Notes: generated by a model not told the origin, from the letters alone. Shown: positions 10,919 through 47,961, counted from the whole stretch's first letter. The stretch is DNA of 63,697 nt, filler included, from Syncephalis fuscata S228 (GCA_025786725.1; 4 parts of 4 records of this genome joined end to end with filler, not necessarily neighbours in it); one strand, 5' to 3'. Numbers and translations are program-made.

Positions 10919-12994
10919 AGTGACAACGTTTGGCAACGAAGGGCACGTGAGCAAGTTGGTTGCTTAATTGTGTGTAAAACACAGCACAGGTTGGGAATGA
11001 TGAGTGTTAAATAATTAGTGAAGTTAACGAGTAGCACTTGTTTGTGGCCACCTTTGAATCCAAGCCAAATAATTTTCTTCTATGCGCAATTAAATAAGGT
11101 TTGCAAGGAGAGGAATGACGACAGTAGTAGTAGTAGTAGTAATAATAGCGATAATAGTGGTAGGTGGATAACAGCCACGTAACTGGGATCTGGCCAAGCG
11201 CTTGGCAATAAACAGTCAACAGCCACGCATATACCGGTGTGCAGTATGTGGCCTATTCTAGTAACAAATCTACTATTTGTACCGATATTTAAAAAAATCT
11301 GCAGCAATCAAAATAGCTGCAGACCAGATGCAGTAACCGTCGACTAATTAAATGTATAAACACCGCCTTTTATCGTAAGTATCGGTGTCGTGATCAAGGA
11401 GTGGAAAACAAATAAAGAAACAAATAAAGAAAGGAAGGAAGAGCTTCAAAGTGCAGTGTAAAAGAGTAGCGGCAGTATTGTTCTTAGTAGCGTTTTAGAG
11501 AAAAGAAAAGCGGTCAATATAATGGAAATACAGCCCAACTCCGACTTGGTTCACCTGTGAACGTCGGATTTGATATTGGCTGGTCTAAAGACAGACACAC
11601 ACACACGCGCGCGTGAATACACACGGCCAAATACACAGGCCAGTAGACAGACAGACAGATAACTAGATAACTAGATAAATAGGTGAATGGAATACGCACG
11701 CAAACTTATAGATAAAGTGCTAGTTATTACCGCTTGGCGAGAAAGCCAGGCGAGAAAGAAAGGTAAATGAAATGGTCGAGAAACAGAAAAGAAAGAACGG
11801 GTCGACACGCGCACAAGCGACTAGCATTAATAGTATTTAATAGTCTGTATTGATGATTATAGCGCAGTTGAATGGAATACTACAAGGTTATTATCTATTA
11901 TTATCGCTAGACAATAACCAACCATGACAAGCAATAGGTCAAAAGCACAAAAGAAAGGATGGAATGAAAGCCAGTGGCACAGAAAAAGGGGACATGCCAG
12001 GCCATGCATTTGATTCATGCTGTTGTCTTCTTCATGTCTGCATAGAAGCCTTGATTTTAAATATCATATTTGTTATATCGATAGACTGGCAAATCGATAG
12101 ACAATGTAATCTAATTATACAGAAATAGTAATAACAGTTAACAGTATTACCAATAGTAATAGCATCATTAAGTAACAGTCAATTAAATAGTAGAAATGAC
12201 AGGTACACTAGTCTATACAATACGTATTTTTTACAAAACTTGTTTTTACTTGTTATCGGTACCTGTGTTCTTCTTTTTATCCATATCTGTAGATGAAACA
12301 GCTTTGTGGTTTTATTGAACGGAGTACAGGTTATTAGCATGGTATGAATGCCAAATATTTAGTAGTGTACAATAGTTATCATTTCTAGTTGAATAAATTA
12401 TATTAATATTACTATTAAATAAAAACTAAAATAGCTATATTAATAAATTGTAATTTTCTATACAAAGAATGGCACGTTATAGCTGTTATTTTATTTTATT
12501 TAAAGTAATGACTGGAAGGTGAAAAATAAATTATTCATATTATAAATACGTTTTTAATCTTTAAACTAAATAAACTTGTTAGTATATCTTAAATTAATGT
12601 AATAATATTGGTGTTCTGCTTTAATGACCATTAAATAATGATTACAAAGCATATTATATATTTATTACTTGGTTACACTTCAATGTTATTGTTAAATAGT
12701 CAAGATAGTGTTGAATCAAATAGGCAATTTACACTAAATTAAATATCTGACGACATTCTACTAAAACATAGCGTCAGTCGTTAGTTGTCACACTACTTTC
12801 GATAAACTTCTTGTTATCTTATTGCTATTGCTCATCTCAAGTTTTTGTAAAGCTGTTTTGTTCACTAATTACGGTTTGAATAACACTATAGCTATACTAT
12901 ACCTTAACAGACTATATTTCAGGGGGAAGTGAAAAGAAGCACCATTAAACCACGTTTGGCACCTAGCAAATAACAGTACGCTTTTTTTTACATC

Positions 12995-13700: not shown

Positions 13701-15869
13701 TAGATACGAGCAATACCGTGAAGATTGCCACCTTTCACTTGAGATCCATAAATAACCGATAGAGAAATACCCAGCACTGTACGTGTATCTCGTGGATCAA
13801 TAATACCGTCATCGAGTAAACGGCTACTGGTATAGTAGACATCAGCTTCTTGTTCTACAACATTATGCATGAGAGCCTTGCGTGCTGCTTGTTCTTCCTC
13901 GTTAATCTGACGTCCCGCTCTGTTTCAATCATAATATACTTAATAAATAACTACGTATTTTGTTACTATGCATTTACACTTACGCTGCTGCACTTTCACG
14001 TGCTACCATGTCCATGACACCGGCCAGTTGTTCGGCGCCCATCACACTGCATCGACTGTTAGGATATGACCATAGGAAGCGTGGTGCATAGGCTCTACCA
14101 CTCATGGCATAGTTGCCTGCACCATAAGAGGCGCCCATAACCACTGTAATTGCCGGTACTTCACTGTTCGATACAGCATTAATAAATTGCGATCCAGCCT
14201 TAATAATACCCGTCGATTCATACTGTTGTCCAACCATAAATCCTGTAATATTTTGTAAATAAATCAATGGCACATTGCTAAATACAGCCAAATTATTATA
14301 AAATATACAGTACTATGAATTACTTGCCGCATATTGCACATTTGAATGAAATGTGTAGCTTTACTGGCTTCGGCATTAAATATAACATTATTGTTTGCTA
14401 TAATACCAACGGGAATGCCTAAACTATCCGTTAGAATATTGCTAGTATAAGTTATTGTATACATTACCATGAATATCTGCCCAGCAGCAAATAAGATTAG
14501 AGCCGTAAAGTGGCTTGAATTCTAAGAAACGTGAACCATCAACTATACGACAAATGACTTCACGGGACTCAAACGGTTTGCGAATATTGGCCTGTACAAT
14601 ACCGAGCAATTCATCTATTAATTATCGTATTAATAAACAAATAAATACATAAACCCTGTTTAAACAATAGCCACCTTGATTATAAAACGGTTCTTCCACA
14701 AGACCACCACTTGGTCCGTACATATGACGTAGTGGTGGTTGACCTTGTTTCTTCCAGTTAAGTGCAGCAATGTATTCACGAGCCTTACGGATACCATCTA
14801 TTTCATCAACAGCAAGCTGGTCTGATACGCCAGATATTCGACTATGCATATCGGCACCGCCTAAACTTTCTGCATCGGTCACTTCTCCTGTGGCCATCTT
14901 CACTAGTGGTGGGCCACCTAGAAATACTTGCGCTTGATTCTTTATCATAATAACATAGTCACTCAATCCAGGTGCATAAGCACCGCCGGCAGTTGATGAG
15001 CCAAATACAATACTACACACGGGAATGCCCATTTTAGAACTAGAAAGAACGCATTATAAGGTAGACTTGTTAGTTAGTGTTTGATAGTAATAGCTATTAT
15101 ATATATATACTATGCTTACGCAATAGCTAGGTTTCGAAATGCACCACCACCTGGATGAAATACAAGTGATTGCTGTCCTAGATTGGCGCCAGCCTATCAA
15201 ACAACAACAATATTATTTATTAATACATTTATTTATTATTTATATCGCTAATAACTTACTGTTTGAACCAAGGAAATGGTCGGCAAATTGTTCTCCATAG
15301 CAATCTTTTGTAGACGTAGTCCTTTAAGGACACCTACTTGGTTTGCCGCGCCACCATTCAGTGTTGGTATACGTGCTTCAATAAGACATTCAATACCGCT
15401 ACCATGATTAATATCATAACAGGTATAATTAGTTGTATTCAGGTGGTAAATAGTCTATTTATTATTTACACTTACCTAACAAGGCCAATACCCGCGACCA
15501 ATGATCCACCAACGGTCATGCCATCTTGTTCCCAGCCTGCTAATGGCATCAACTCTAGGAAAGGCGAGTCAGGATCAAGTAGAAGCTCCACACGTTCACG
15601 CGCTATATCAATATATCATCATTAGTATAGATGGATATGGATATGGATGTTGATATCACTAACTTACCAAGCATTTGACCGCGCTTTAAGTGGCGCTTTA
15701 TGTGATGTTCTTTGCCTTGATAAGTGGCTTCGTTTTGCAAGCGTTCATTAAGTTGCTCGACCAACTCGGTCATAGCGGCGTAATTACTCGCATATTCTGG
15801 TGTTGTTGTATCCACAGCGCTTTGATAGCGCGGATATTCTTGTTTCACCGCGGAGACTGAGTTTTCCAT
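13700..15869 (-). CDS. Acyl-CoA carboxylase carboxyltransferase (beta) subunit, methylcrotonyl-/geranyl-CoA carboxylase beta-like, multi-exon
   Basis: [87 protein letters not shown]; ends HGIARI*. Confidence 0.9.
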
Positions 15870-16507
15870 GGCAATAGTAGCTGTAGTAATTAGTAAATAA
15901 CCTGACGAAGAAGAAAATAAAGCTATTGAACACGGTCACACACACTTAGTTAAGTGTATTAAGCGGTAAAGTTACGTATATGGCTCTAATCTTTGTGTGG
16001 GGAAGTACTCGGCAGTTTAACATTCCGACTTTATTAAGTAAACACATTTTTATAAAATAAACCTATCTATTTTCTATAGTTTGTTAATAAATAGCTAATA
16101 TATAATATTACATTTATATTCGTATGCAAATAGTGGCTGCTAAATAAATACTTATTTATTTGACAGAATAGAATATTACAAATATTGATGTAGTAAAATA
16201 ATGGACTGCTGGTTGTTTGTCATGTCTAGTAACAAGCAGGCAAAATAGTTTAAATATAGATTAAGCTAATAACATCGAGTTAGCTACGTGTTTATATTAT
16301 CTAATAAGTAAATGATATAGCCGTAAGACATATTAATTTATATACATTATCTTTTATTGTAGCAATATGGTGTTATCCTATGGCATTACGCAATAAAACT
16401 ATAGCGCACCTTTTCCTTCTTGGATACAGCTATGCTATAGCACATGCCTTCCTTTAAATACACTCAAACTACCGCTTTTTTTATTCCACTGTTGACTACT
16501 TGGCATA

Positions 16508-17430
16508 ATGTCGGCACCATTGGTAGTAATGCCGCAAAGCGAAGAGGTACAAAACAAGGACAAACAGACTAAAACACTTTCCATACTGCTTACTGGCTTT
16601 GAGGTAATTTACAAAAAGTAAAATAGTTAGCTAGATAGACTGACTAATACTTTATGGGCTATTGCTGGCTATGTAGCCGTTTGGGCATCCACGACCACCC
16701 ACTAATCCGTCTTGGGAGCTACTAAAGCCGTTAAATAATACAGAAATTGAGCTTGAAGGCCGGCGGATTCAGCTGCACTGCCGTGAGTTACCGGTTGTTT
16801 ATGAAAAGGCAAAAAAGATGGTATTTGAATTGCATCGGACATCTCGTTCAACTGCCAATTTAGGTGATGCATCCGACGCTGACCTCGTAGGCTATGATAT
16901 GTACATTCATATTGGGCAAGGAAGCCTAGGATCGGTTTTTATTGAACAACAGGCCCGTAATGGTCCCTACAGTCGACAAGATAATGACCAACACATTCCA
17001 TCGCATCCGTATTGCGAAGGATTGGATGGCGATGATAATAGCAAGTACCCACTGCATACATATCATCCTGTTTATTGTACTCGTATCGATGTGTTAGCAT
17101 TACATGAGTGGCTAACTAAAGAACGTTCATGGCCAGATGTTCGTATTAGCGAGGCAGGTATTAAGTGTTGATGTCGGTTTATTTCTAACTATTATTAATA
17201 ATTAGGATCCTGGATTGTATCTTTGCGAATATGTATACTATCATTCACTGCACGTTAGCCACGCCATGTCTAATACAACGGAGCCCGTATCTTCATCACT
17301 TGGCGATAAGTCTGAGAAGCCTGTTTTATTTATTCATGTACCCACACCTAAGCATCCTTTCGCTATTGATCAGCTTACTGCTTTGGTAAATGATGCAGTC
17401 TATTGGCTTGCCGAACATTATTTGAAGTAG
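16508..17430 (+). CDS. Pyroglutamyl-peptidase I (peptidase C15), 3 exons
   Basis: LLTGFEPFG...NPSW, LPVVY, IHIG, EQQARN, SEDPGLYLCEYVYY (catalytic Cys), FIHVP (catalytic His). Confidence 0.9.
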
Positions 17431-17651
17431 TTGGTATTAGTTGCTGGATTGACAAATAAAAATTGATTATATAACGTTTCCCCCAAGTTACTACATAAAT
17501 TAAAAGCAGAAATTAATTAAAACGGCATTAAATTTTCAGTTATTTCATATGTTAAACTAAGTAAAAAACGGCAACTGAACAAAAAGCAAAATGATTTAAA
17601 CAGCAGAGAGCGAAAGTCAAATGATTAATTTTAACAGTATTGTGCAGTTGA

Positions 17652-18660
17652 ATATTTGCTCTATTGAATATGGGGCCGCGTAGTAAGAAATATTAATAAA
17701 TAAAATTATTTAATTATAATATGGTTTTATGGTTAATTGACTATACTTAATAAATTTAGGCAATTAAACTAAATATTTGTTCTATTGAACATGCTAATGG
17801 GTGGTGAATAATGTCAGTGATTAAACTACTTATCATCATAGATTTATGATTCAGTATGTATATATCCTATATTCATTTATATCATTCCCATTCTGTCCCA
17901 CACTAATATATATTATTCTATGATATATTAGACACATTCTATTGTTTATATGTTCCAATACACTTTACTCGATTCGCTTATTGCACTATATACAGTATAG
18001 CATTAGCACCGCTTATCATACTATTACCAGTATATATTCATTCTATGCTGTATCACTCTATACTCTCCTAATCACGCTTTATCCAATGCTATTTTTATTT
18101 TTGTTCTAGCTTTATTATTAATAAATGTCGCATATGTCGGTCATTTGCTCATGTATATATGCACTTTAACTTTAAACTAGCTACTTACCAATTTGGTTCA
18201 TATATTCTGTATGTTATGTGTGTTGTTTTATTGCCTAGTAAACATGAACTAGCTATCGAGGCTATTCTTTTGGTTTTAGAGCTATTATTAGTAAATCTCA
18301 ACTCATTTTAGCTTATTCATTTAAAGACTATATGTAATTGAAATATTAATAAATGGAATGTATTTAATATATCATAGATTAATATATAGTAATATAAATA
18401 TACAATGTTAATTATATATGTGTGTGTACTGAATATATGCATACTGGATAATGAATCTATGATGATGAGTATTTGATAATTAATGTCACTCACCGCCCAT
18501 CATCATGTTCAATAGATTGGATGTTGTTAAAAATAGTCATTTGACCACCAAACAAACAATAAATGTGATGATGTAATGATTAAATAAAACTCACCACTTG
18601 TCCCCATGTTCAATTGCGCGAATGTTATTAAAAGGTCGTTTGATCCCAAATCACATTAAA
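17652..18660. mobile_element. AT-rich non-autonomous TIR element (MITE-like family), copy 1; internal ~85-bp inverted repeats starting at 17782 and ending at 18515
   Basis: CTATTGAACATG..ATGGGTGGTGA...TCATCATAGAT vs ATCTATGATGA...TCACCGCCCATCATCATGTTCAATAG; interior matches copies at 27.3-28.3 kb and 52.5-53.1 kb in reverse orientation. Confidence 0.75.
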
Positions 18661-29179: not shown

Positions 29180-29568
29180 GGAGTGCGTAATTTTAATTCA
29201 AATCGAAGGAGTGTTGTTGAAAGGAGACAATTCTGTGTAAACAAAGAATACGGCAGTTGTTGCTGTGATGATATGGTTCCCCAGACAACATCGATTGATG
29301 ACGCAACAGTAGTGCGATGTCGATAACGTTGCTAGTTACGTTGACATGGCGTGCTAGTCAATGGAATCAATGTAATAGCGATAATGAGCGAATGAGAGCA
29401 GATTGATTGATTAATTGAACACTTGACCACAACTTTTGACATTTAGACATTTACTAATCGATGTTATGCGTATTTTATAGACAAATCAGTATGACACGCC
29501 TTAGTAGTACACTTGCCTTTGTTGGCATCGCCTGCTTACTGGCTACTACGGCGATGGCTAGACCTGAT
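29180..29568 (+). repeat. Outer arm A of the inverted duplication (partner 35118-35507); runs off the contig end
   Basis: By eye identical to the reverse complement of 35118-35507 except one 1-nt indel near the contig end; covers upstream intron, ATG and signal peptide. Confidence 0.92.
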
Positions 29569-30537
29569 GCTCCAACGTATAAGCAACCCATCACGACTTC
29601 AATGGGTACACCGGAAGTTTGTAGATTTCCATTCTTTTATGATAATAAGTGGTTTTATACCTGCATTGCTACGGATATTGAGCCTGGTAATCCTGGTAAG
29701 CCATGGTGCGTGCTTAAGGACGAATATGTGCCAGCCAAGCCTGCAAACAACTGGCTTTACTGCGACATGAGCAAGTTCCAATCTGCTGGTATTTTATCCG
29801 ATGGCCACCGATACTCCTGTCTTCCGCAAACGCTACCTAATATAACATACACTGGCTGCATTGGTGACACTGAAAAGGGGCCTTCTAGCTGCAAGACTGA
29901 TAATGACGGTACTGTGGTTACTGGCTCTTGCCTTACTATAAGGTCTCAATTAGATCTCGGTGGTGACAATACTGCTAAAACCGGACTTGCCATCTCGGTT
30001 GGTGCTAACGACGCAAATTCCGATGATGATTCTACCAAAAAAGGCAGCAATAATGTTGTCATTAGCTTGGCTGCAGTGCTCAGCGTCGCCGGCGTAGGCT
30101 TATTGGCTGGTCTATTCATTTATCGTCGCCGCCAATCGCGTCAAAATCTATCATGGCGCCAACAAAATAAAGATGAAGGTCAAATGGAATCGAGCGCAGC
30201 TGGCCCCGGATTTGCTGCCATGGCTGCCGTTGGTGCTACCGGCTATCGTGAATCAGCATCAAGCAGTAATATCTTTTCGCCAGTCAGTCCAGGCGAGCGT
30301 ATGTACCCAGTTATCAGCACATATACACCTACATTAGGCGACGAGTTAGAGATCCAACCAGGTGATAAGGTCAGCATTCTTATTGAATATGACGATGGAT
30401 GGTGCCAGGGTGTCAATCATACACGCGGTGGTCTTAAAGGTGTATTCCCGCGCCATTGTGTTGATATGACTGCTGGTATGCCAGTAGATGATGCAGACAA
30501 GACGGTCAATTCAAGTACAGCCACCATCGCCGTATAA
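29491..30537 (+). CDS. Single-pass membrane protein: signal peptide, fibronectin type II-like ectodomain, TM, cytoplasmic SH3 (paralog A)
   Basis: CRFPFFYDNKWFYTC...KPWC...WLYC (FN2 pattern); TM ending LLAGLFIY-RRRQSR; SH3 YPVISTYTPTLGDELEIQPGDKV...DDGWCQG...GVFPRHCV; branch point and TAG acceptor just upstream of ATG 29491. Confidence 0.85.
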   Translation: MTRLSSTLAFVGIACLLATTAMARPDAPTYKQPITTSMGTPEVCRFPFFYDNKWFYTCIATDIEPGNPGKPWCVLKDEYVPAKPANNWLYCDMSKFQSAGILSDGHRYSCLPQTLPNITYTGCIGDTEKGPSSCKTDNDGTVVTGSCLTIRSQLDLGGDNTAKTGLAISVGANDANSDDDSTKKGSNNVVISLAAVLSVAGVGLLAGLFIYRRRQSRQNLSWRQQNKDEGQMESSAAGPGFAAMAAVGATGYRESASSSNIFSPVSPGERMYPVISTYTPTLGDELEIQPGDKVSILIEYDDGWCQGVNHTRGGLKGVFPRHCVDMTAGMPVDDADKTVNSSTATIAV

Positions 30538-31542
30538 ATCATCCATTTCGCTTTTAATTATCGTACTTTTCTCTCTCTCTCTCTTGATTCTTTACGCTCA
30601 CTCCACTTCCACTGCCAACACAATACACCACATTACACCTACGATATATATATACATACATATATAATCACACCAACAATAGCCTCCACACCTACATCAG
30701 CCACCACCATATTGAACCTTGTTGACAGCCTACCAAATGGCACCGCAATAATGATGATGGCTACTATTATTATTACAGCTATTATTATTACTATTAACTG
30801 TCATCGGTTAACGTAATAATAGTAATGTTGCCGGTATGGCTAACAACAATAAACGATACAATGACGCATACGATCCCGTTGCGCTGTTGACCAGCACACA
30901 GGACTGTATGCAATCAATGGCGTACGTGTGCGTATAGATGTACGTGTTGATGCTTTGTATATGTGTACGCAAATCTATATATTATATATCCATAGGTGTA
31001 ATCGTGTTGTAGTGTTATACTTTTATTATTATTATAATCTTGATTTACACTTGTTACTGATTAGTATTATATTGCTAACATTAACATTGCCATCACACCA
31101 CCAACATCACTACTACTACCACTACCACAACGATAACTAGCACAATCCATATTCCAATTTCTGTCACAGCCCATCTGTTCTTTTGGTTAAATGCTTGGTT
31201 TATTATTTATCCATAATTCCGTTTATTAATTGAGCCATTTGTGATATGCCCTAATTCACAAAGGTGCTACATGTTTACGCGTTCATTGTTGATTAAATAA
31301 CGATGATTTACATATAATATTGAGTATATGGTAGATGAATAGCCATATTAAATACATGTGTTTATGTGTGTGTTTATGTTTACGTGTGTGTTTATAATAT
31401 GTATAATAATCATTGTAACAGCTTATACAATTAAATTAAGATGGATCCAATTTAAAAAAGCTTCTATGTGATGACAATGGCTATATAATAGAAATAATGG
31501 CAATAAAATGTTAAGTTAGAAATTAGTAATTTATATTGTAAT
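30316..31542 (+). repeat. Inner arm A of the inverted duplication (partner 33118-34346)
   Basis: ~1.23 kb reverse-complement match; by eye only 3 substitutions in the SH3-coding part and a 2-nt indel near the inner end. Confidence 0.92.
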
Positions 31543-31622
31543 TAAACGTTTTTGACAGTCTGGTTACTATTCCAGCCAACTTGTTTATTTTCGTCAATAC
31601 ATCTATATACCATAACAACTTC

Positions 31623-33226
31623 ATGACGCGCCTTTCAAACATTGACGGAATACCAGCAGAAGTACTAGACATATTGTCTAATGCCAGTATTTACACGGGT
31701 AATAATAACATATAGTACGTCAATAGTAGTCATTGCTTTAACTATATACGATTACTTTCAGCTCAAGACGTACTTACTACTGACAAACAAACGCTTTGTC
31801 AAAAAACAAATCTATCACATTCGGTAAGTTTAAATCTGGTTGAATTGGTTTAATAATGATAAGGCACAGCTAGTTGAACAGTTGTATAGTCGAGTAATAA
31901 ACAGTTTTAATATTTCTCTCAATACTGCTAGCTCGCTTATTACATCAGCTACATCATTTTTTCCAGCTGGGATACTACCGTCAGGCACTCGATTATCCAC
32001 TGGCTACACTAGGTAAATATATAGTTTAAATCTGCAACTGCTTAATATCATACTTAAGGATCACTACTATTAGTATAGATCGATTATTGAATGGAGGTCT
32101 ACTGCCAGGTCAAATTACCGAATTATTTGGGCCAGCAGGAGCGGGAAAAACCCAAGTAAATATTTAAATAGTATAACTGTAGCAGGTGACATTAACTGAT
32201 TATGAGTCTAGATTGCCTTTAGTACAGTTGTGCAATGTCTTATGTTATTACATTCATTAATGCTTAATCAAACTGATAACAATGATAATGATAATAACCA
32301 GGATCAAAGTGCTAATGGTACCACTCCATTCATTGCCTATATAGACACGTGTGGCTCATTTTCCGCCCATAAGCTATATACACTTCTTTGTAATCAATGG
32401 TCTGACCGTGAAGGTATCTAAATGTTAAATTGATATATAATTTACTAAAACTGGAATCATATAGATTGTATGTCGGCGTTAAAATATGTTCGCGTATTTT
32501 CCTGCAATACTATTTATGATGTATTTAATGCTCTTGAACAATTGGGCGGCTTTAGTAACTCTCAAGTAAGTATAGCAATTATAAATATTGAATAACAACC
32601 TTAATACTTGATGAGTTAATTACTTACTACTATTCCCGTAAAAGTCACCATTGCTGATTGTTCTTGATTCGGTATCGGCTGTGTTGGCACCTTTACTATC
32701 CAACCAAGCACGTCAAGGTATATAACTGTAATAGTCACTTTTATATGCTATAACTGTGTTTAGGACATGTTCTTATGTCAGAACTGGCTTATGTCCTTTC
32801 CGATATAGCTCACAAACATTCCAGTATAGTCTTGGTAAGCTGAATGGTTTTATTAGCAATTTAAATTTAATCATGCATCTATAGATATTAAATAGTGCGG
32901 TGCGTCAACCTATTGAAGATGACGACGGAATCGCTTTAGATTCTACAGCTCTTTTAGCTATCCAGCCACCTCAGTCAAATGCCTTGTCTAAACCAGCTCT
33001 GGGTGCTACTTGGTCTTATACACCTCATGCGCGTATCTATATTGCGCGGGATGGTGAATCGCAATCTAAATCTGTTAGATACTGTTTACTTGTAAAGTCC
33101 AAACAGCAAGCAAGTAGATTACAATATAAATTACTAATTTCTAACTTAACATTTTATTGCCATTATTTAACTATTATATAGCCATTGTCATCACATAGAA
33201 GCTTTTTTAAATTGGATCCATCTTAA
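31623..33226 (+). CDS. RAD51D: RAD51 paralog, RAD51D-like, multi-exon
   Basis: LSTG..SIDRLLNGGLLPGQITELFGPAGAGKTQ (Walker A), AYIDTCGSFS, LIVLDSVSAVLAPLL (Walker B), KPALGATWSYTPHARI, KSKQQ|PLSSHRSFFKLDPS*. Confidence 0.85.
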
Positions 33227-34346
33227 TTTAATTGTATAAGCTGTTACAATGATTATTATACATATTATAAACACACACGTAAACATAAACACACACATAA
33301 ACACATGTATTTAATATGGCTATTCATCTACCATATACTCAATATTATATGTAAATCATCGTTATTTAATCAACAATGAACGCGTAAACATGTAGCACCT
33401 TTGTGAATTAGGGCATATCACAAATGGCTCAATTAATAAACGGAATTATGGATAAATAATAAACCAAGCATTTAACCAAAAGAACAGATGGGCTGTGACA
33501 GAAATTGGAATATGGATTGTGCTAGTTATCGTTGTGGTAGTGGTAGTAGTAGTGATGTTGGTGGTGTGATGGCAATGTTAATGTTAGCAATATAATACTA
33601 ATCAGTAACAAGTGTAAATCAAGATTATAATAATAATAAAAGTATAACACTACAACACGATTACACCTATGGATATATAATATATAGATTTGCGTACACA
33701 TATACAAAGCATCAACACGTACATCTATACGCACACGTACGCCATTGATTGCATACAGTCCTGTGTGCTGGTCAACAGCGCAACGGGATCGTATGCGTCA
33801 TTGTATCGTTTATTGTTGTTAGCCATACCGGCAACATTACTATTATTACGTTAACCGATGACAGTTAATAGTAATAATAATAGCTGTAATAATAATAGTA
33901 GCCATCATCATTATTGCGGTGCCATTTGGTAGGCTGTCAACAAGGTTCAATATGGTGGTGGCTGATGTAGGTGTGGAGGCTATTGTTGGTGTGATTATAT
34001 ATGTATGTATATATATATCGTAGGTGTAATGTGGTGTATTGTGTTGGCAGTGGAAGTGGAGTGAGCGTAAAGAATCAAGAGAGAGAGAGAGAAAAGTACG
34101 ATAATTAAAAGCGAAATGGATGATTTATACGGCGATGGTGGCTGTACTTGAATTAACCGTTTTGTCTGCATCATCTACTGGCATACCAGCAGTCATATCA
34201 ACACAATGGCGCGGGAATACACCTTTAAGACCACCGCGTGTATGATTGACACCCTGGCACCATCCATCGTCATATTCAATAAGAATGCCGACCTTATCAC
34301 CTGGTTGGATCTCTAACTCGTCGCCTAATGTAGGTGTATATGTGCT
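33118..34346 (-). repeat. Inner arm B of the inverted duplication; contains most of the RAD51D last intron, its last exon, and the SH3/3'UTR of paralog B
   Basis: Reverse complement of 30316-31542. Confidence 0.92.
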
Positions 34347-35195
34347 AACTACAGGATATAGGCATTCTGTAGGACTAAGTGGTGAAAGTATTTGACTGTT
34401 TTCTTCAGAACCGTAATAACTTGATGTATCGTTATTGATTCTAGAGGTACTTGCAGCAGTCATAGGAACAGTAAGTTCAGTACCAATAGTACTTGGATCA
34501 ATTCGTTGCATACTCCTGTCTTCGTACTGCATCGACATACTTTGTCGTGATTGCCGACGACGATATACAAATAAACCAGCAAGTAGAGCAATGGCACCTA
34601 CAAAAAATGTAATACCTAGAACGCCACCAAGACCAATGCTGCTTTTATTGGGTGAGTCGGTGTTTTCGGTTACAAGAGCCGCTTTGGAAACAGAATCGAC
34701 ACTTTCCAAGTTTTGTTTTACACTTAAACATGCTCGGTAATCTTGTTTACCACCAACGTCAACGAGACATTGGAATATGCCGTTTTTAGTATCAGCACTA
34801 CATCCCATATATGTCTCATTTTTGACTTTTTGAGGAAGACAGTCTTTACGCACGCCATCAACTATAGCACCAGGCGCATGGAATGTTTTCATATCACAGT
34901 AGGCCCATTCGGGAGATTTGGCATTCTGAGAGACATATCCTTTTTTAAGCATGCACCATGGTTTGTCGTCCGTGCTACCAAGAGAAATACAAGTTGACCA
35001 ATACTTTTTACGACTGAAAAATGGTAGCTCGCACGATGTTGGCGTGCCCATAGCAACCGTGATGTTTTTACTATCCTGTGGATTGTTTGTAGTATCCTGT
35101 GGGTTATCCTGTGAGTTATCAGGTCTAGCCATCGCCGTAGTAGCCAGTAAGCAGGCGATGCCAACAAAGGCAAGTGTACTACTAAGGCGTGTCAT
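34125..35195 (-). CDS. Single-pass membrane protein: signal peptide, FN2-like ectodomain, TM, SH3 (paralog B)
   Basis: CELPFFSRKKYWSTC...KPWC...WAYC; TM ending LLAGLFVY-RRRQSR; signal peptide identical and SH3 nearly identical to paralog A. Confidence 0.85.
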   Translation of the reverse strand: MTRLSSTLAFVGIACLLATTAMARPDNSQDNPQDTTNNPQDSKNITVAMGTPTSCELPFFSRKKYWSTCISLGSTDDKPWCMLKKGYVSQNAKSPEWAYCDMKTFHAPGAIVDGVRKDCLPQKVKNETYMGCSADTKNGIFQCLVDVGGKQDYRACLSVKQNLESVDSVSKAALVTENTDSPNKSSIGLGGVLGITFFVGAIALLAGLFVYRRRQSRQSMSMQYEDRSMQRIDPSTIGTELTVPMTAASTSRINNDTSSYYGSEENSQILSPLSPTECLYPVVSTYTPTLGDELEIQPGDKVGILIEYDDGWCQGVNHTRGGLKGVFPRHCVDMTAGMPVDDADKTVNSSTATIAV

Positions 35196-35507
35196 ACTGA
35201 TTTGTCTATAAAATACGCATAACATCGATTAGTAAATGTCTAAATGTCAAAAGTTGTGGTCAAGTGTTCAATTAATCAATCAATCTGCTCTCATTCGCTC
35301 ATTATCGCTATTACATTGATTCCATTGACTAGCACGCCATGTCAACGTAACTAGCAACGTTATCGACATCGCACTACTGTTGCGTCATCAATCGATGTTG
35401 TCTGGGGAACCATATCATCACAGCAACAACTGCCGTATTCTTTGTTTACACAGAATTGTCTCCTTTCAACAACACTCCTTCGATTTGAATTAACAATTAC
35501 GCACTCC
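35118..35507 (-). repeat. Outer arm B of the inverted duplication
   Basis: Reverse complement of 29180-29568. Confidence 0.92.
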
Positions 35508-36751
35508 TGCCACGTCATCTTTAAACACCGCCACATTACATTACATCATCATCATAATAGCAATAATATGGATATGGATATGGATAGCGCTATACTAGCA
35601 TTATAATATAATGTGCTAAGTCACATTTGTACAACATCCAATAGAGTACACGGATGGATTGGCCATTATCGCTATAGCCCAGTACTTACAGACTACTGTC
35701 CAATGCTTACTAGTGGATATCAAAAAGGTAAATTGAAAATAAAGAACAGAGAACCAGCTCCTTTTGACTAGATATGCCGTGCAATAAGAAGCAGGAATCG
35801 AGAAGCAATTGAACTGGTATCGTATACTACACCGTACGTACACGCAAATAAGAAGAAAGAAAACAAAGTATACGTGCTGCAGACAGAAAGGTCGACTGCA
35901 CTACAAGTTTGGAAATAATATACTGCAGTAAAGCTTTGCGTTGCGTTCAAATGAATAAAAGTAAACGCTATTGAATAAAAGAAAGCCAATAGCAATTGCT
36001 AATAGGTGCAATAACTATAGACTATGAAGATATGAAGTTAAATGCAAGTCGGAATGGCCAACAACAAAGGAAAGAAGGCCAAAGGCTTCAAAGACTAAGA
36101 CTAGCGACAGCTATTCAGATAGACAATTAAGTAAAGTGTGAGTGAGAGTGAAAGAGTGAGTTAGGAAAGAGAAGCGAGTAGAAGCGTGCAGGATAGCAAA
36201 GGATAGCGTGTTAAAACCTGATGCGCATGCCACTTACCATGCAATCCACATGAATCCACAATAATAATTAAGAACAGGTTAAGAGAAAAAGGCACAAGGT
36301 TAAACAACAATGCCTGCTTTCTGTGAAAGGCGCGACAAGGCAAAACTGTCCTACACATGTGCATCTAGAATACATGCAATTTACTTTTATACTATTCATA
36401 GTTGCACATCTTACAGTGCCGAGCAGCAATTAAGGGAGTCGAGTATCATCAATGCAGCCACTATTCCTACCACTACCAACACTATTATTTTTATTATTGC
36501 TGCTGCTAGTGCTGTAACATCTATGGTGTTACAAATAGCAATGAACAAGTTTATTTCAATCTAATTCTGCATAATTTCATGGTACCAAGAGTATTGGCAC
36601 ATATGGACTGGCAGAACGCATGTACTATGTCGTGCTAGTTTGTGCCATGTATCAATAACCGGTAATGTAAAGTAATGTGTGGTATTAGATAGACAATGAA
36701 TGAAAACAAATATAAACTCTTTTCTATTACATATGCGACTAGAAACCAATA

Positions 36752-38156
36752 TTAAGAAGAAGTAAATCGTTGGAATTCATCACACATCGGCAAAGGAGCC
36801 CGTTCTGCACGACGAACAGCCTCCTCGTCATAGCCAATGCCGAACCAGCCTTTGGCCCGTTGGATCTCCTGTTGCCGTCCATGGCGTTCCTGGCGACAAC
36901 GTCGTTCCAAATGATAGGCGTAGTCGTTCTCGATTGTTTGCTCATAACGGGCCAATCGCTGCTTATTGCCACCCACATACGAGTTAAGATCGCGGGCATT
37001 CACATAGTATGGCACGTGACGGGGTGTCGTATGTTGTTGTGAATGATGATTGTAAGTGCGACTGAATGAATAGGTCGGCTCAGAAGGCCCAGAGAAGATA
37101 TTACTTGAAAAGGTAATAAATAAAAGGAGTAGCAGTGGTAGTAATTGAACTAAATAACCAAAACCTGTCGTATTCTCTTCTCGAGCTGCTCTACGCTGTT
37201 GTTGTTGTTGTTGTTGAGCTGCTCGACCACCACTATTAAATCGTTGAAATCTTACACCATTGCCCATAAATGATGCTGATGAAAAGCCTGTATTTATATT
37301 AATTAATTAATAAATTACATATATACATATTATAATCGACATCAATAATCTATTTACCTTCATTAAATCCACCATTGAAAAACATATTAAATAATTGTTC
37401 AGGCGTAATTTCTGATTCAAAATTAAATGCAGCACCGCCACCACCATGATGAAATCCAGGACTGCCACCACCACCTCGAGATTCTGGATCAGCACCATAT
37501 CGATCATAATGCTCTCGTTTATCTTGATCACTTAATATTGTAAATGCTTTACTAACCACTAAATAAATAAATCAATATCTATTTAATTAATAATTGATAT
37601 TAATCAACAACTTACACTTGAATGCTTCATCTGCACCAGGTGCATTATTTTTATCTGGATGCAATTGAAGCGCCAGCTACACTGATGTTAATTTCAAGCT
37701 ATTTATTTCTGCTAGACTAATTACCTTGCGATATGCTTTTTTAACATGTACTTCAGTGGCAACCTTTTCAAGTTCTAAAATACCATAGAAATCACTTTTT
37801 GAACATGATAACACACGCTTTACCGCTATTGTATTCTCTTCCGTATAACTGGCAGACGCTTTTGATGAAGAGGGCCCACTGTCAGTTGATGCAGTGCGTG
37901 CACCACTACCACTGCCGGTACTTGTTGCAGTACGTTGTCGCAATTCGGGCTGTGCATTTGTACTGCGAGCTGATGAATCGGCCGTACTAGCTGTTTCGGC
38001 CAGTACAAGCTTTTCTATCAGCGATTCAGCCTCATTCGTTGGGTAGAGATTATTTGATTTACGTGCAAATCTCAATGCCCCTGCTACATCACCTTCATCG
38101 CGTTTCCGCCGCGCTATACCAATGCAACGAGACGCTTCGTCTTTATTCATCTCCAT
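36752..38156 (-). CDS. ER membrane J-protein, DNAJB12/14 (Hlj1-like) with DUF1977
   Basis: MEMNKDEASRCI, J domain LALQLHPDKNNAPGADEAFK, YDRYGADP, ITPEQLFNMFF, TM LVQLLPLLLL, C-terminal DUF1977-like Cys region. Confidence 0.9.
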
Positions 38157-38433: not shown

Positions 38434-38593
38434 TGTAGAATACAATTCTGTGTGTGTATTATTTACTGGCCTTGGTCATCCTCCTATTCACACCACACAT
38501 TATAGAGAGAGAGAGTATTATGAGTGAGTGAGTGGATAACCAAGGCCAGTAAATAAAACACACACACACAGAATTGTATTCAATTATTCTACA
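38434..38593. repeat. Short imperfect inverted repeat (arms ~38438-38481 and ~38534-38581); MITE-like hairpin
   Basis: gaatacaattctgtgtgtg...tttactggccttggt..atcc vs ggat..accaaggccagtaaa...cacacacagaattgtattc. Confidence 0.8.
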
Positions 38594-41809: not shown

Positions 41810-42793
41810 CTAATTGAGACTAGCATAATATCTTTCATTATATGGATCATTAATGGTTACATTAGAGGCAGCCAGTAATATAGGCGTTTCTAATTCCATA
41901 TTTCTAGATTGGAGCAGTGCTTGTAGATCGTTGGTTCTACCGGCGGAATCTGGCCATGTATTATCGGGATAGCAGCATAGCATAGCTCGACGCGTATGTA
42001 GAAAGTCTGTCAAGTAGGCGCGTTCAGATCTTTGACCACGCTGCCCGGTAAGATTAATGATTCTTTGGATATTAATATCCGGTTCTGTAAGATGCCAACC
42101 ATGTTGCACGATTGTATCGTAGAATATAGTGATACCCAGCGCTGATTGAATATTAAGACGGTGGGCGAATCGAAGGGCTGGTTCAAAGTACATTTCACGC
42201 GCTAGTTTTAGTTGAGCATTGCGAAAGACCGCATCGTTCTGCGCTGTTCTACGCCAGGCATTAGGAAAGCCATTTAGTTTATTGACACTGCTACGCTGTG
42301 TATCACATGGATCGAGCGAGGCAAGACGTCGTAGTTCAGGTAGGTAAGAGGCAAATGGATTATTGTCGTCAAGTCGTTGTCGATTGTATCGTTCAATGAC
42401 CATTAGTGCATCGCCGGTGGCAGTGGTAAATCCAACCACACCGGCCGTAAAGCCGCGTTTATCGTTAAGATTCTCTATATAGTCATAATGAGGTCGGTCA
42501 TCGCCATTCTCAAATGCACTTGTTATACGTCGAGCCACCATGGCTGTGTATTCGCTTGCATCGGCCATTGGCCAGTGGTCAGTATCGGGGAACTCGCCAA
42601 CGACCGATTCCGAGTATGAGTTTGCACAGCTATTTGAGCTTTTCTTTAAACGTGAAAACTTAAACGCCGAACATAAATCATTATCAGGTAGATAATTTCC
42701 CGAGCAGTAACGCCTTGCGCCATCGACCATACAACAACAAGCTGTAATGATCAATACAATACTTAATAAATGATAATACGCCGCGAACAACAT
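41810..42793 (-). CDS. Secreted chitosanase, glycoside hydrolase family 46, intronless
   Basis: Signal peptide; ITSAFENG, YDYIENLNDKRGFTAGVVGFTT, YLPELRRL, YFEPAL, FYDTIVQHG, YLTDFLHTRR. Confidence 0.9.
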   Translation of the reverse strand: MLFAAYYHLLSIVLIITACCCMVDGARRYCSGNYLPDNDLCSAFKFSRLKKSSNSCANSYSESVVGEFPDTDHWPMADASEYTAMVARRITSAFENGDDRPHYDYIENLNDKRGFTAGVVGFTTATGDALMVIERYNRQRLDDNNPFASYLPELRRLASLDPCDTQRSSVNKLNGFPNAWRRTAQNDAVFRNAQLKLAREMYFEPALRFAHRLNIQSALGITIFYDTIVQHGWHLTEPDINIQRIINLTGQRGQRSERAYLTDFLHTRRAMLCCYPDNTWPDSAGRTNDLQALLQSRNMELETPILLAASNVTINDPYNERYYASLN

Positions 42794-43067
42794 TGTATTC
42801 AACTAGTTAGTGAGTATGCGAGTACTTGTTATATTCGTAAGCAAAACTGTCTTTATTTAAAGCTCAAGTATGAATCAACGCTTGCTTGTGTTCCACCTGA
42901 CTATGTCAGTGATCCGATCCATCATAATCGATTTATAACTGGCACAAATGTGTATTATATACACAAAAAAGATAACACATAAGTAATTAGTTTTAATTTG
43001 ACCACTAATACATTATTGTTATTATCAACTACCATTATTATTACATTTTGTTTGTTATTATCAATTG

Positions 43068-44587: not shown

Positions 44588-46936
44588 ATGGCAATGCAAA
44601 CAAACGATAATATAATTGATCAATCAGAGGAACGTGTTACCATTTATCCACTACATCCACGACCCGGTGCTATTAGAGAAATTAGTCGAAGTTCAAAGCT
44701 ATTTGCTTTAATGAAAGAGGATGGTCTCTCGGATGTCGTTGTTACGCGTGGCACATTGAATGGATTGCGCGGTCGATATCTCACCTCACTAGCCAATATG
44801 CCCAGGGCCAATGAGGAGAGAACAGCAGCGTCAACATGGCCAGTTGAAGCGGTAGAGATGTTATCGGATACACTGCGTGAACAACAACAACACGAATCAA
44901 CACGACCCGTCCATCGATCATGGCGTCGTTCCATAAGAAGATCCTGCTTCCATTGGCGTAAGTGACTACAAATATATTTAGTATTACAAGTGGGCAGTTA
45001 ATTAATAGTTTGTGTAATTAGGCCAGCGTATTTTATTCGGTAGTTTAGCGTTAATTGTTCAAGCTGCATTATTCTATTTTGCGTGGACTGATACCACGTT
45101 TCGTAGACGATATCATGGTGCACTTGAATTCTATGGCCCTACCTCGCTTATACTTGCCCGTTCTGCTGCCAGTGTTATTAATGTACAAATGGGCATATTG
45201 TTATTTACGTTGTGTCGTATTACAATCACGTATTTACGTAAAATTATTCCAAATCGAATTATTCCACTTGATAATATTCATGTAGCACACCGTGTTCTTG
45301 CCTGGTCGATTATGGCTATGACACTAGTTCATATCATCGGTCACTATTGGAGTATATACAATGTCCGTCGGTTAATCGCCACCACACATAGAGACAATCA
45401 TCGTGGTCATAATGGCTATAATAGTCATAATAATAGCAATGACGACACGTTAATGCAAATTCTATTACATCCAGCTAGTTTAACTGGACATGCTATGCTT
45501 ATTATCATCCTATTAATGGCCTTTACGTCATTTGGTAAGCCATACTATTCCATACTACAGTTCACAAATGCTAATCTAACTGTAATGAAGCGTATGTAAG
45601 AAAGCGCAATTATGAAATGTTTTCCTATACACATCAATTATACATGGCATTTATACCACTGCTTTTATTACATGGCGCATTTTGTTTTCTTAAAAGCGAC
45701 CAGAAACCTGAATGCTCAACAATGGGCGGTACATTTTGGCATTATGGTCTACCCGGACTTGTTTGGTATATTGGTGAACGTATTTACATTGCCGTTTATC
45801 ATAGCCGTTCTACAACCATTCTTGGTGTCTATGAACATCCATCACAAGTGATTGAAATACATGTGGCACGACCGCCTAATTTCCATTATGGTACCGGTCA
45901 ATGGGCCTATCTCTCTGTAGCTGAGGCAAGTCCATGGCAGAAACATCCATTTACGATTACATCGGCGCCGGAGGAAAAGAACCATATTTGTTTTCATATT
46001 CGGGTTGTTGGCGACTGGACACAACGATTGGCTGCTCAATTGAACTGCTCACTCGATATAACAAGTCCATTCTCGGCACTTTTACGATCCCAGGCCACCA
46101 GTACAAATAACAGTAGTGCTGTTAGTAATAATGGTATTAGCAATACAGCATTAATGCCACCCATTCAAATCGATGGCCCTTATGGTGCCGTATGTGATCA
46201 TGTACTCGATTACAAAGTGGCAGTGCTTGTGGCTGGTGGTATTGGTGTAACACCATTTGTCTCGACACTTAAAAGTATTTGGTAATAATCAACATGTATA
46301 ATATAGCAATACTAATTCAATTGTAGGCTTCAATGGACAAATGCCTCCCATGAAATGAAATTGAAAAAAGTGTATTTTATTTGGATTTGCCGTGATTTCA
46401 AGGTAAAACTAGTCATTATTATTATTATTATTATTCATTAGTATTGGCATTGATGATAGGCATTTGAATGGTTTTACGACTTGTTGGCCACTTTAGAAGA
46501 TGGCCGTATAAGCTCGCTATTATCAATGCGTATCTATGTTACTGGACAGTTAGATTTAGAGCAGATTTGGAATGTGGCTATGCGAGCCGGTCATAATGAA
46601 GATGCTCTAACCGGCTGGCACATGCCCACCTTCTATGGTCGACCTAATTTCAATGTTCTATTTCATGACCTTACCGAATCACATCCTCAGACAGATATTG
46701 GTCTATTTTGTTGTGGCCCTCACTCACTTACTGCCACACTACGCCGTCACTGTCAACGCTACACATTGGCCAAAGGATCAGGCACGCGATTTTATTTTCA
46801 CAAAGGTAAAAGAAATGAAAATGAATTGATTTTGGATACACACACTTTTGTGCGTTAAACAATAACTACTAACACTGTTGTTATTACTACTGCTTCATTG
46901 TATGATTTCTATATGTCTCTAGAACATTTCAATTAG
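44588..46936 (+). CDS. NADPH oxidase (gp91phox-like) with N-terminal extension, multi-exon
   Basis: Heme His pairs (AHRVLAW...HIIGH; YTHQLY...LLHG), FAD motif QKHPFTITSAPEE, IDGPYG, GGIGVTPF, VYFIWICRD, FYGRPNF, CGP, FYFHKEHF. Confidence 0.88.
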
Positions 46937-46950
46937 TCTCGTTCGTTCTA

Positions 46951-47961
46951 CTAATGGTTAATATGCTTTAACGCATCTGAAAATTCGTGGGCAATACGTT
47001 GCATTGCACGGTTATTGGCTAGTATTAATATGTAAGTAGGTTATTAACAATACAATACTAGTGTATTGATACTTACCTATAATAGGCAGAATTGTTTGTA
47101 GTAGTTCGTGCTTCTTTAATCCCTAAAATAAATGTTAATAATAAATATTACAATTCTATTTTATTAATTACACAAATGGTTGGTTCCCAGGATGAATCTG
47201 TTTTAGCTGTTGTTGTCTTGGATGTATCATTCATAGTCGTTGTGGTAACCGTGAAATCCACAGCCATTCTATTATAGTCAATTAATTAACCAATTATAAT
47301 ATAATATAATATAATAACTTACGGATAAGAGGGTCCTAATAAATTTCTGCATAATTCTTCTGTCTTATCAATTAAACTATCATTGGTCAATCGACGTACG
47401 TATTTCAATAACCAACGTTGATATTCTTCGGGTGATGCAAGTAATTCAGCACTCATTAATTGAGACTATTTAGCAATCAACATTAATATACTTATGCACT
47501 TTTATCAATAGATCTATTTACCTCTAAATGATCAATTGATAGTAATGCTTGTTGTTGTTGTTCCGATCGTAATTGATCACTACGTTGAACACGTCCATGA
47601 TCAGTACAAGTACGTTCAGCAATAATCTGAGCCACAGTTAATGGACCTCCGCCATGTACATCAGGATTCAATGCAGTGGCCACTGGTGCAAAATACTCTG
47701 ATGCTGCATACCACGCATCAACAATACGTGACCATGTCTTCATATTTTGATCATAGGCAAATGCACAGCCATTTGATGTACATAGTACAGGTGTGCCATT
47801 AGCATGCACACAAGCATCAGTAATAGTAACACCATTACTGAGCGTATCAGATGAATTAGCTGTTGTAGCTGATTCTTTGTATAAAATGGCGGCAATGGAT
47901 TCATTCGACAGAATAGCCAGACGTTCTTTAATATCCCTGTAACAACATTAGATATCTACAT

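Follow-up and report, generated by a model that had tools for sequence, protein, structure and literature searches.

How could two neighbouring genes be kept almost identical at both of their ends and in the non-coding DNA beside them, while their middles have gone separate ways? The question is raised by two FN2-TM-SH3 genes, here called A and B, that lie tail-to-tail on either side of a Rad51-paralog gene in the window (the whole 63,697-nt stretch of Syncephalis fuscata S228 DNA that was analysed, filler included). The first-pass annotation of this DNA had proposed a flip-flop or cassette-switching receptor locus, with a hypervariable middle between constant repeats. The explanation that we regard as probable is an old inverted duplication, now a nested palindrome, in which the arms have been homogenised by recombination, the A and B cores have persisted and inversions have occurred occasionally, with no regulated switch.

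A repeat search and pairwise alignment reproduced the arm and core coordinates of the first-pass annotation (Table 1). The arms consist of two near-identical inverted repeats, one nested within the other, with the diverged cores between them. The copies of arm 1, which carries the 5'UTR intron and the signal peptide, differ by 0 substitutions and one 1-nt indel over a length that is a minimum, as the left copy is truncated by the contig end at 29180. The copies of arm 2, which carries the SH3 domain and approximately 1 kb of 3' DNA, differ by a 2-nt indel after 31491 and by 3 substitutions (30373, 30501 and 30507), all of them within the SH3 coding part, and the non-coding DNA of this arm, about 985 nt, is 100% identical between copies. 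Identity between core A (747 nt) and core B (771 nt) amounts to only 34-57% per 100 alignment columns, and to 39% between the proteins, and their synonymous sites are saturated (pS 0.73). A step-like identity profile of this sort cannot be due to chance and is found again in a second species.

Table 1. Features of the locus, in positions of the window
Feature	Position	Strand	Content and evidence
Arm 1, left copy	29180..29568	+	3' part of the 5'UTR intron (to 29480), start of exon 2 (29481), gene A codons 1-26 (signal peptide)
Gene A CDS	29491..30537	+	ORF, 348 aa
Core A	29569..30315	+	Ectodomain, TM helix, juxtamembrane linker; not homogenised with core B
Arm 2, left copy	30316..31542	+	SH3 domain of A, C-terminal tail, 3'UTR (to ~31105); reverse-complement copy of the Rad51-paralog last exon
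Unique spacer between arm 2 copies	31543..33117	.	No repeat partner (repeat search, alignment)
Rad51-paralog gene	31623..33226	+	10 exons, 359 aa; nine spliced joints in one RNA contig; frame check
Arm 2, right copy	33118..34346	-	SH3 domain of B, tail, 3'UTR; on the opposite strand, Rad51-paralog last exon and 3'UTR
Gene B CDS	34125..35195	-	ORF, 356 aa; architecture as in A
Core B	34347..35117	-	Ectodomain, TM helix, linker
Arm 1, right copy	35118..35507 (minimum extent)	-	Repeat search, alignment
Gene B 5'UTR intron 1	35207..36237	-	Its 3' end, ~300 nt, is arm 1
Conserved non-coding block, ~60 nt, in DnaJ-side intron 1	36071..36130	-	81-84% identical in L001 (2403-2463) and L002 (8289-8350)
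DnaJ-side exon 1 (5'UTR), 3' end	36238..36268	-	30-nt loose end of an RNA contig matches with 1 mismatch; RNA overhang 255 nt

The window was compared with two further loci, one in Syncephalis plumigaleata (L002, on a 976-kb contig) and one on a metagenome contig (L001). The syntenic S. plumigaleata locus lies mid-contig and has the same nested inverted repeat, with diverged cores and a Rad51 paralog in the spacer; its arm 1 copies (8398-10074 and 16017-17680) are 98.5% identical and its arm 2 copies (10828-12082 and 14000-15244) 99% identical. Within a genome the arms are thus 98.5-100% identical, whereas between species the figure is about 70-84% for coding sequence, and the arm intron and 3' flank give no alignment at all. 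The signal peptide is 100% identical within species against 68% between them, and the SH3 domain with its tail 99-100% against 82-84%. These contrasts bear out the earlier proposal that recombination homogenises the arms, and indicate that recombination between the inverted copies has kept both arm 1 and arm 2 almost identical within each genome since the duplication.

The cores behave in the opposite way. Cores A and B are 35-39% identical whether they are compared within or between species, whereas A-A core orthologs are 49-78% identical and the B-B pair 45%, the latter being core B of the window and the B-type core of S. plumigaleata. Core A of the window is 49-52% identical to the A-type cores of the other two loci, against 39% to its neighbour core B. 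In the core tree, B cores form a clade across species (support 100/98), with a weaker A clade (48/85), and the AU test rejected within-species core clades both for the window (winA+winB, p 1.8e-4) and for S. plumigaleata (L002A+L002B, p 1e-49). The ectodomain, TM and linker cores, judged by this tree, were spared homogenisation and survive as two paralog lineages, A and B, and the duplication is older than the split of the window species and S. plumigaleata. As first suggested, one constant SH3 tail is therefore served by two ectodomain/TM types, both of them old and distinct. The middle is not hypervariable as had been claimed: the cores are under purifying selection, with a dN/dS of 0.14 between the A cores of the metagenome contig and S. 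plumigaleata (SH3, 0.05). The A-type copy of S. plumigaleata carries two 1-nt deletions, so in some species the pair may not amount to two functional receptors. Taken together, these alignments and trees describe an old pair of inverted paralogs that undergoes segmental concerted evolution.

Arms of this kind could also recombine by crossover, and the gene orders of the three loci differ. With DnaJ taken as plus, the order is DnaJ, B(+), Rad51(-), A(-) in the window, DnaJ, B(+), Rad51(+), A(-) in S. plumigaleata and DnaJ, A(+), Rad51(+) on the metagenome contig. The orientation of the Rad51 paralog relative to DnaJ thus differs between the window and S. plumigaleata, and what follows the DnaJ-side flank and its conserved block is core B in both of these, but core A on the metagenome contig. 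The three genomes represent three of the four possible arm-recombination isomers, and inversions have therefore happened in evolution, although only the S. plumigaleata locus stands on a long contig, and in the window and the metagenome contig, if these are short-read assemblies, the path through an identical arm of about 1 kb, and hence the orientation, could be arbitrary. The DNA runs gave a few short contigs, at a depth of 4-6, none of which spanned an arm. One inversion exchanged which core follows the DnaJ-side first exon, so that such a swap has happened at least once. The inversion part of the first-pass annotation thus stands as evolutionary traces, and its cassette-type switching finds no support.

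For the gene in the spacer, the Rad51 identity comes from the syntenic S. plumigaleata gene model, which has a precomputed Pfam Rad51 match and to which local tblastn links the window gene. The spliced protein, with a Walker A motif GPAGAGKTQ, was used for the frame check and for tblastn against the two other loci; when the exons of the window gene were searched one by one against Pfam and NCBIfam, there was no match. Its last intron (33110-33181, GC..AG) spans the border between spacer and arm, so that the right arm 2 contains the last 14 codons and the stop, together with the 3'UTR to at least 33554. The left arm 2 supplies the DNA upstream of the start, and an adapter-tagged RNA contig end at 31582 gives a faint hint that transcription begins 40 nt into the spacer. 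The last exon is inside the arm in the window and 237 nt outside it in S. plumigaleata; the arm's inner border has therefore shifted. As the upstream DNA and, in the window species, the last exon lie in arms that are identical on both sides, the gene can tolerate inversion.

Genes A and B are both transcribed. In a run verified as RNA by its spliced joints, RNA contigs cover core A (29539-29999) and core B (34317-34700 and 34702-35147), at a depth of approximately 3500 for core A, 1900-2100 for core B and 270 for the Rad51 paralog; these are bulk RNA data, and single nuclei may differ in which gene they express. The exclusive expression of A or B that the switching proposal entailed was not seen in this bulk RNA, in which both cores were covered at similar depth; each copy is a complete gene, and there is no sign of a silent cassette. 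The upstream intron of the first-pass annotation proved genuine, with RNA contigs splicing into the gene A acceptor at 29480/29481. One RNA contig joins sequence ending at 36238/36239, next to a GTAAGT donor, to the acceptor at 35206, which corresponds to 29481. In the RNA the same acceptor is joined to two different upstream sequences, the DnaJ-side one and another that is absent from the window, and a separate first exon seems to belong to each gene. The RNA contigs disagree with the assembly at a few positions in the arms. Three loose RNA contig ends hint at a third related locus.

The homogenisation probably came about by non-crossover gene conversion between the arms. At the cores, conversion would be blocked either by tracts ending where the sequences diverge or by selection against converted cores. 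Now and then a crossover in these same arms would invert whatever DNA they enclose: in arm 2 it would flip the spacer, and in arm 1, inside the 5'UTR intron, it would exchange the cores between first exons and promoters. The genomes differ by exactly the two kinds of inversion that arm 1 and arm 2 crossovers would produce.

It is very improbable that the structure is an artefact of assembly, amplification or haplotypes, with A and B as alleles or unlinked paralogs falsely joined in a fold-back, even though the structure lies at the edge of a contig, where the left arm 1 ends. A fold-back chimera would have neither a unique spacer nor diverged cores, but the 1575-nt unique spacer here holds an intact, spliced and expressed gene, the last exon of which reads into the right arm, and independent RNA contigs bridge each core into the arms, a linkage that reaches at most 30 nt as these contigs break at repeats. 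The same nested repeat, gene content and core types recur on the 976-kb S. plumigaleata contig, which also speaks against the assembly collapse or chimera that had been kept in mind at first. A fold-back or MDA chimera, or alleles of one gene, were rejected on the unique spacer, the diverged cores and this counterpart. Hardly any credence is left for a history without ongoing gene conversion, in which the arms are alike through purifying selection on non-coding DNA or through a recent independent duplication in each species. Selection would have targets, since the arms hold the signal peptide, the SH3 domain, UTRs, and the last exon and upstream region of the Rad51 paralog; however, arm intron and 3' flank that are 98.5-100% identical within a genome and unalignable between species are the opposite of what it predicts, and selection-driven conservation of the arms was rejected for this reason. 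Recent independent duplications, in turn, are incompatible with cores that group by type across species and with their saturated synonymous divergence.

A genuine flip-flop, in which frequent arm 1 crossovers in the coenocytic mycelium swap promoters and first exons between the A and B cores and nuclei or life stages differ, is unlikely, although several findings fit it: arm 1 is intronic, two different upstream sequences share an acceptor, the flanks outside arm 1 in S. plumigaleata are unrelated on the two sides, and the DnaJ-side flank reveals at least one swap. Against it, the two cores have similar depth in bulk RNA, and the three isomers come from three distant species (dS 0.5 to above 2), for which about two events over a long time suffice. 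The yeast analogue discussed below is stable on laboratory timescales (PMC9731477), and no recombinase gene, site-specific motif or nearby silencing region was found at the locus. We would give a smaller chance still to an intron-borne invertible element, in which crossover within the 5'UTR intron swaps promoters and first exons between receptor cores and leaves the coding sequence untouched, while the inner repeat lets the Rad51 paralog survive in either orientation. If such crossovers were frequent in a multinucleate mycelium, its nuclei could come to differ in how the two host-sensing receptors are wired. Judged by the evidence available, the inversions are infrequent by-products of evolution and not a regulated switch.

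In the palindromes of the human Y chromosome, arms kept approximately 99.9% identical by intrachromosomal gene conversion surround a unique spacer, and inversions of the spacer occur. The Syncephalis locus resembles them in these respects, but it is of kilobase scale and its arms are interrupted by a conversion-resistant coding core of two functional types. In the phage Mu G segment and similar systems, a site-specific recombinase acts on short sites and one variant is expressed at a time. There, as here, two inverted variable receptor-binding parts go with a common constant part, and inversion re-pairs the variable part with a fixed upstream expression signal; in Syncephalis, however, the homologous arms are long, a recombinase is absent and each side has a promoter. 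Cassette-type antigenic variation differs in having silent, incomplete donors and a diversifying variable part, whereas the Syncephalis copies are complete signal-peptide ORFs, both transcribed, with cores that are old paralog lineages under constraint (dN/dS 0.14).

Mating-type switching in Ogataea polymorpha and Komagataella phaffii proceeds by flip/flop inversion (e.g. PMC5720833) and likewise involves two alternative inverted genes bounded by inverted repeats, recombination between which causes the inversion. In Ogataea, however, one locus is silenced by centromere proximity and starvation induces inversion, whereas both Syncephalis genes are transcribed, the repeats are parts of the genes and not flanks, and no silencing region is evident. 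The closest analogue is the flip/flop region of Saccharomyces chromosome XIV, a paralog inverted repeat homogenised in each species and repeatedly re-inverted (Salzberg et al. 2022, PMC9731477). In both cases paralogous genes form an inverted repeat whose copies are homogenised again and again in each species, and the enclosed DNA has differing orientations among lineages without orientation being a regulated switch. The enclosed DNA is 24 kb with 15 genes in Saccharomyces and 1.6 kb with one gene in Syncephalis, where the orientations compared are those of different species. Unlike those of Saccharomyces, each Syncephalis arm is split by an unhomogenised core, giving two nested repeats and four possible isomers, and the genes are chimeric, with constant ends and a divergent middle.

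The locus is thus a natural example of mosaic concerted evolution, in which recombination maintains identity in non-coding DNA and at both coding ends and the middle is held as two old functional types, with mosaic boundaries common to species diverged to synonymous saturation. It extends the yeast phenomenon of flip/flop by homogenised repeats to an early-diverging fungal lineage, with the added twist of nested repeats, promoter exchange via an intron and the absorption of the last exon of a recombination gene into the repeat.

As for the proteins, A and B are predicted to be type-I membrane proteins with an FN2-containing ectodomain, one TM helix and a C-terminal SH3 domain. Both scored above the Pfam gathering cut-offs for the domains assigned in the first-pass annotation, with 29.5 bits (A) and 24.9 bits (B) for fn2 (PF00040; cut-off 22.2) and 36 and 36.9 bits for SH3_9 (cut-off 30). 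Protein A has, in order, the signal peptide, an FN2 module and a second 4-Cys module, the TM helix, an RRRQSR motif, the linker and the SH3 domain. The FN2 modules show the four-Cys/aromatic pattern, with Cys residues invariant in 12-18 relatives, and matched MMP-9, MRC2 and fibronectin chains in phmmer. The structure model of protein A has the TM helix at 194-219 and an SH3 fold, which Foldseek matched with probability 1.00 to many SH3 structures (TM-score by target, 0.8-0.88); the ectodomain model (pLDDT 81) had no significant Foldseek match in the PDB, its FN2 rows being weak and non-significant, and an ESM Atlas look-up gave weak leads only. NCBIfam had no match for A or B, an exact-sequence look-up found no identical record for protein A, and literature searches found no fungal FN2-SH3 proteins. 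A metagenome scan yielded no more than three short contigs (1.2-1.6 kb), all from distant relatives, which are uninformative on locus architecture; one relative, P0003, sits on a 1.5-kb contig. FN2-TM-SH3 proteins are an uncharacterised surface protein family, highly expressed in an obligate mycoparasite, and are candidates for sensing the host or the cell wall. Tentatively, A and B could be two co-expressed surface sensors that differ in extracellular specificity and recruit the same proline-motif partner via a common SH3 domain.

A last observation concerns the conserved block in the DnaJ-side intron. An Rfam scan of 29180-37000 gave nothing credible and the block matches no Rfam family. The intron around it does not align between species, and in the relatives the block holds the palindrome CTATTCGAATAG.

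Within positions 29180-50990, a repeat search found two long inverted-repeat pairs framing the tail-to-tail FN2-TM-SH3 genes A and B (see table). The two copies of each arm are almost identical, and all three substitutions in the inner pair (arm 2, comprising the SH3 part and 3' DNA) fall within the SH3 coding part. The left copy of the outer pair (arm 1, comprising the 5'UTR intron and signal peptide) stops at the contig end, so that the extent of arm 1 in the window is a minimum. The blocks separating both pairs (the cores) are 747 nt and 771 nt long, with 34-57% identity per 100 alignment columns. In the encoded proteins, A and B are 100% identical in the signal peptide, 39% in the core and 99% in the SH3 domain and tail. 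The near-identical ends and diverged middle of an inverted gene pair, as described in the first-pass annotation, were thus reproduced in both coordinates and identities.

Coordinates of the repeats, genes and conserved block in the window and in the syntenic locus of S. plumigaleata (L002) and the third-species contig (L001)
Feature	Locus	Position	Strand or orientation	Remark
Arm 1	window	29180-29568 / 35118-35507	inverted	0 substitutions, one 1-nt indel (alignment)
Arm 2	window	30316-31542 / 33118-34346	inverted	3 substitutions, one 2-nt indel (alignment)
ORF A	window	29491-30537	+	348 aa
ORF B	window	34125-35195	-	356 aa
Arm 1	L002	8398-10074 / 16017-17680		98.5% identical
Arm 2	L002	10828-12082 / 14000-15244		99% identical
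Conserved block	window	36071-36130	minus	DnaJ-side intron 1
Conserved block	L002	8289-8350		DnaJ-side intron 1
Conserved block	L001	2403-2463		DnaJ-side intron 1
DnaJ/DUF1977 gene	window	36755-38156	minus	
GH46 (chitosanase) gene	window	41813-42802	minus	Pfam E 5e-45; syntenic at L002 1017-1430
NADPH-oxidase/ferric-reductase type gene	window	45189-46858	plus	Ferric_reduct, FAD_binding_8, NAD_binding_6
HIRA-like gene	window	47495-47809	minus	

Both A and B score above the cut-offs that Pfam sets for fn2 and SH3_9, and sequence matches link the FN2 part to FN2 modules from MMP-9, MRC2/Endo180 and fibronectin. Eight cysteines of the ectodomain are invariant across the family. In the AlphaFold model, the ectodomain is predicted with confidence (pLDDT about 80-90), a TM helix spans 194-219, the linkers are disordered and the SH3 domain shows an SH3 fold; a structure search with the ectodomain model gave no significant match for the second four-cysteine module. 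The full architecture was also found in Syncephalis, Basidiobolus and metagenomic fungi, and the TM-SH3 part is common across Mucoromycota and Mortierellomycota.

The flanking genes are syntenic with those of S. plumigaleata at about 70% DNA identity, which marks the organism as a Syncephalis-like zoopagalean fungus. There, inside a 976-kb contig, the same nested inverted repeat, diverged cores and Rad51 paralog in the spacer are present, and the arm/core borders fall on codons that match those in the window, directly after the signal peptide and directly before STYTPT. An assembly artefact is therefore ruled out. Across species, the coding parts of the arms are about 70-84% identical and the intron is not alignable. 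As the arms are near-identical in each genome yet diverged between species, their likeness must stem from continuing homogenisation rather than conservation, which bears out the earlier proposal that recombination homogenises the arms.

The cores show the reverse pattern. Core B of the window clusters with the B-type core of S. plumigaleata (support 100/98), the A clade was recovered with weak support (48/85), and trees constrained to unite both cores of a single species were rejected by the AU test (p 1.8e-4 and 1e-49). Because synonymous sites between A and B cores are saturated and dN/dS between the two closest A-type orthologs (from L001 and L002) is 0.14 in the core (0.05 in the SH3 domain), the cores are old paralog lineages under purifying selection, and not the hypervariable middle that had been proposed. 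In the S. plumigaleata A-type copy (L002 15007-16090, minus), two A-runs, near 15636/15637 and 15375/15376, are each 1 nt shorter than in the L001 ortholog, and these deletions break the ORF into three frames. This copy is either a recent pseudogene or affected by long-read homopolymer or sequencing error; given the core dN/dS, any decay would be recent.

Taking the neighbouring DnaJ gene as +, the order reads DnaJ, B(+), Rad51(-), A(-) in the window, DnaJ, B(+), Rad51(+), A(-) in L002, and DnaJ, A(+), Rad51(+) in the 6.9-kb metagenome contig L001. Compared with L002, the spacer of the window is inverted, the product of an arm 2 crossover; compared with L001, all DNA between the arm 1 copies is inverted, the product of an arm 1 crossover. 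If the window contig and L001 come from short-read assemblies, their orientation could be arbitrary, as such an assembler may thread inverted repeats either way; of the three loci, L002 alone is clearly part of a long contig. The DnaJ-side 5'UTR intron holds a block of about 60 non-coding nt that is 81-84% conserved in the three species, while the adjacent intron is unalignable. It includes the palindrome CTATTCGAATAG in both relatives, had no match in Rfam and could be a regulatory site or an unknown small RNA. The flank carrying it precedes core B in two of the three genomes and core A in the other. In L002, the sequences beyond the outer ends of arm 1 are unrelated to each other and the block sits immediately past the arm, so arm 1 apparently spans no more than the intron and signal peptide. 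An arm 1 crossover would swap promoters and first exons between cores.

The spacer gene encodes a probable Rad51 paralog (10 exons, 359 aa, Walker A GPAGAGKTQ). Its exons, searched one by one in Pfam and NCBIfam, gave no match; the joined protein was used for a frame check and for local comparison with the L001 and L002 loci. The last intron (33110-33181, a GC..AG pair with donor GCAAGT) straddles the spacer/arm border, so right arm 2 contains the final 14 codons, the stop (33226) and the 3'UTR, and the left arm bears a reverse-complement pseudo-copy of the last exon (about 31434-31478). The DNA upstream of the start of this gene lies in left arm 2, and the pseudo-copy sits just upstream of the gene's own start. 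The last exon is within arm 2 in the window and 237 nt outside it in L002; the arm 2 border facing the spacer has thus shifted between the two.

One public run gave GT..AG-spliced contigs and is therefore RNA. Contigs are spliced into the acceptor 29480/29481, which identifies the arm 1 DNA preceding 29481 as a 5'UTR intron. An upstream exon on the minus strand terminates at 36238, where a GTAAGT donor follows, about 730 nt past the known end of right arm 1, and a second, different upstream sequence that is not present in the window, ending ...TTTGAC(TAG), is spliced to the same acceptor. The A and B copies probably carry different first exons. The DnaJ-side 5'UTR exon 1 (36238-36268) ends in ...ATGTGGATTGCATG; once spliced to the 5'UTR start of exon 2 (29481-29490 in the copy of gene A), both of its ATGs start very short uORFs before the main start at 29491/35195. 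Contig depth was about 3500 for core A, about 1900-2100 for core B and about 270 for the spacer gene. As both cores are covered, A and B are both transcribed, and neither copy is silent at the population level. Between contigs and assembly there are transitions at 30456, 33275, 33280, 33510 and 34923, a (CT)n at 34078 is 4 nt shorter in RNA, and three loose ends (29478, 30566, 33884) exit the arms into sequence outside the window. Such discrepancies may stem from variation between strains or alleles, or from a third locus that has portions of the arms in common.

The best-supported reading, which we consider probable, is that an old inverted paralog pair has undergone segmental concerted evolution. 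Arm-to-arm gene conversion would keep the gene ends homogenised, the diverged cores would resist conversion, either mechanically or via selection, and the inversion isomers seen across species would be products of rare crossovers. The closest published analogue is the flip/flop region of Saccharomyces chromosome XIV, in which homogenised inverted paralogs lead to recurrent re-inversion with no regulated switching (PMC9731477). We regard a frequent, functional flip-flop that swaps promoters between cores as unlikely. The Ogataea-type switch (PMC5720833) does not fit, as silencing of one copy is among its defining features and both cores are present in RNA, and cassette-type antigenic variation fails on silent donor cassettes and on diversifying selection.

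Gene order toward DnaJ and GH46 is conserved in S. plumigaleata. GH46 occurs mainly in bacteria or viruses, whereas chitosanases of fungi usually belong to GH75; in a parasite whose Mucorales hosts have chitosan walls, the GH46 gene could encode an enzyme against the host wall that was acquired by horizontal transfer. Immediately upstream of DnaJ, at 38449-38566, lies a (TG)n-rich inverted repeat of 43 nt (86% complementary) with a 32-nt loop.
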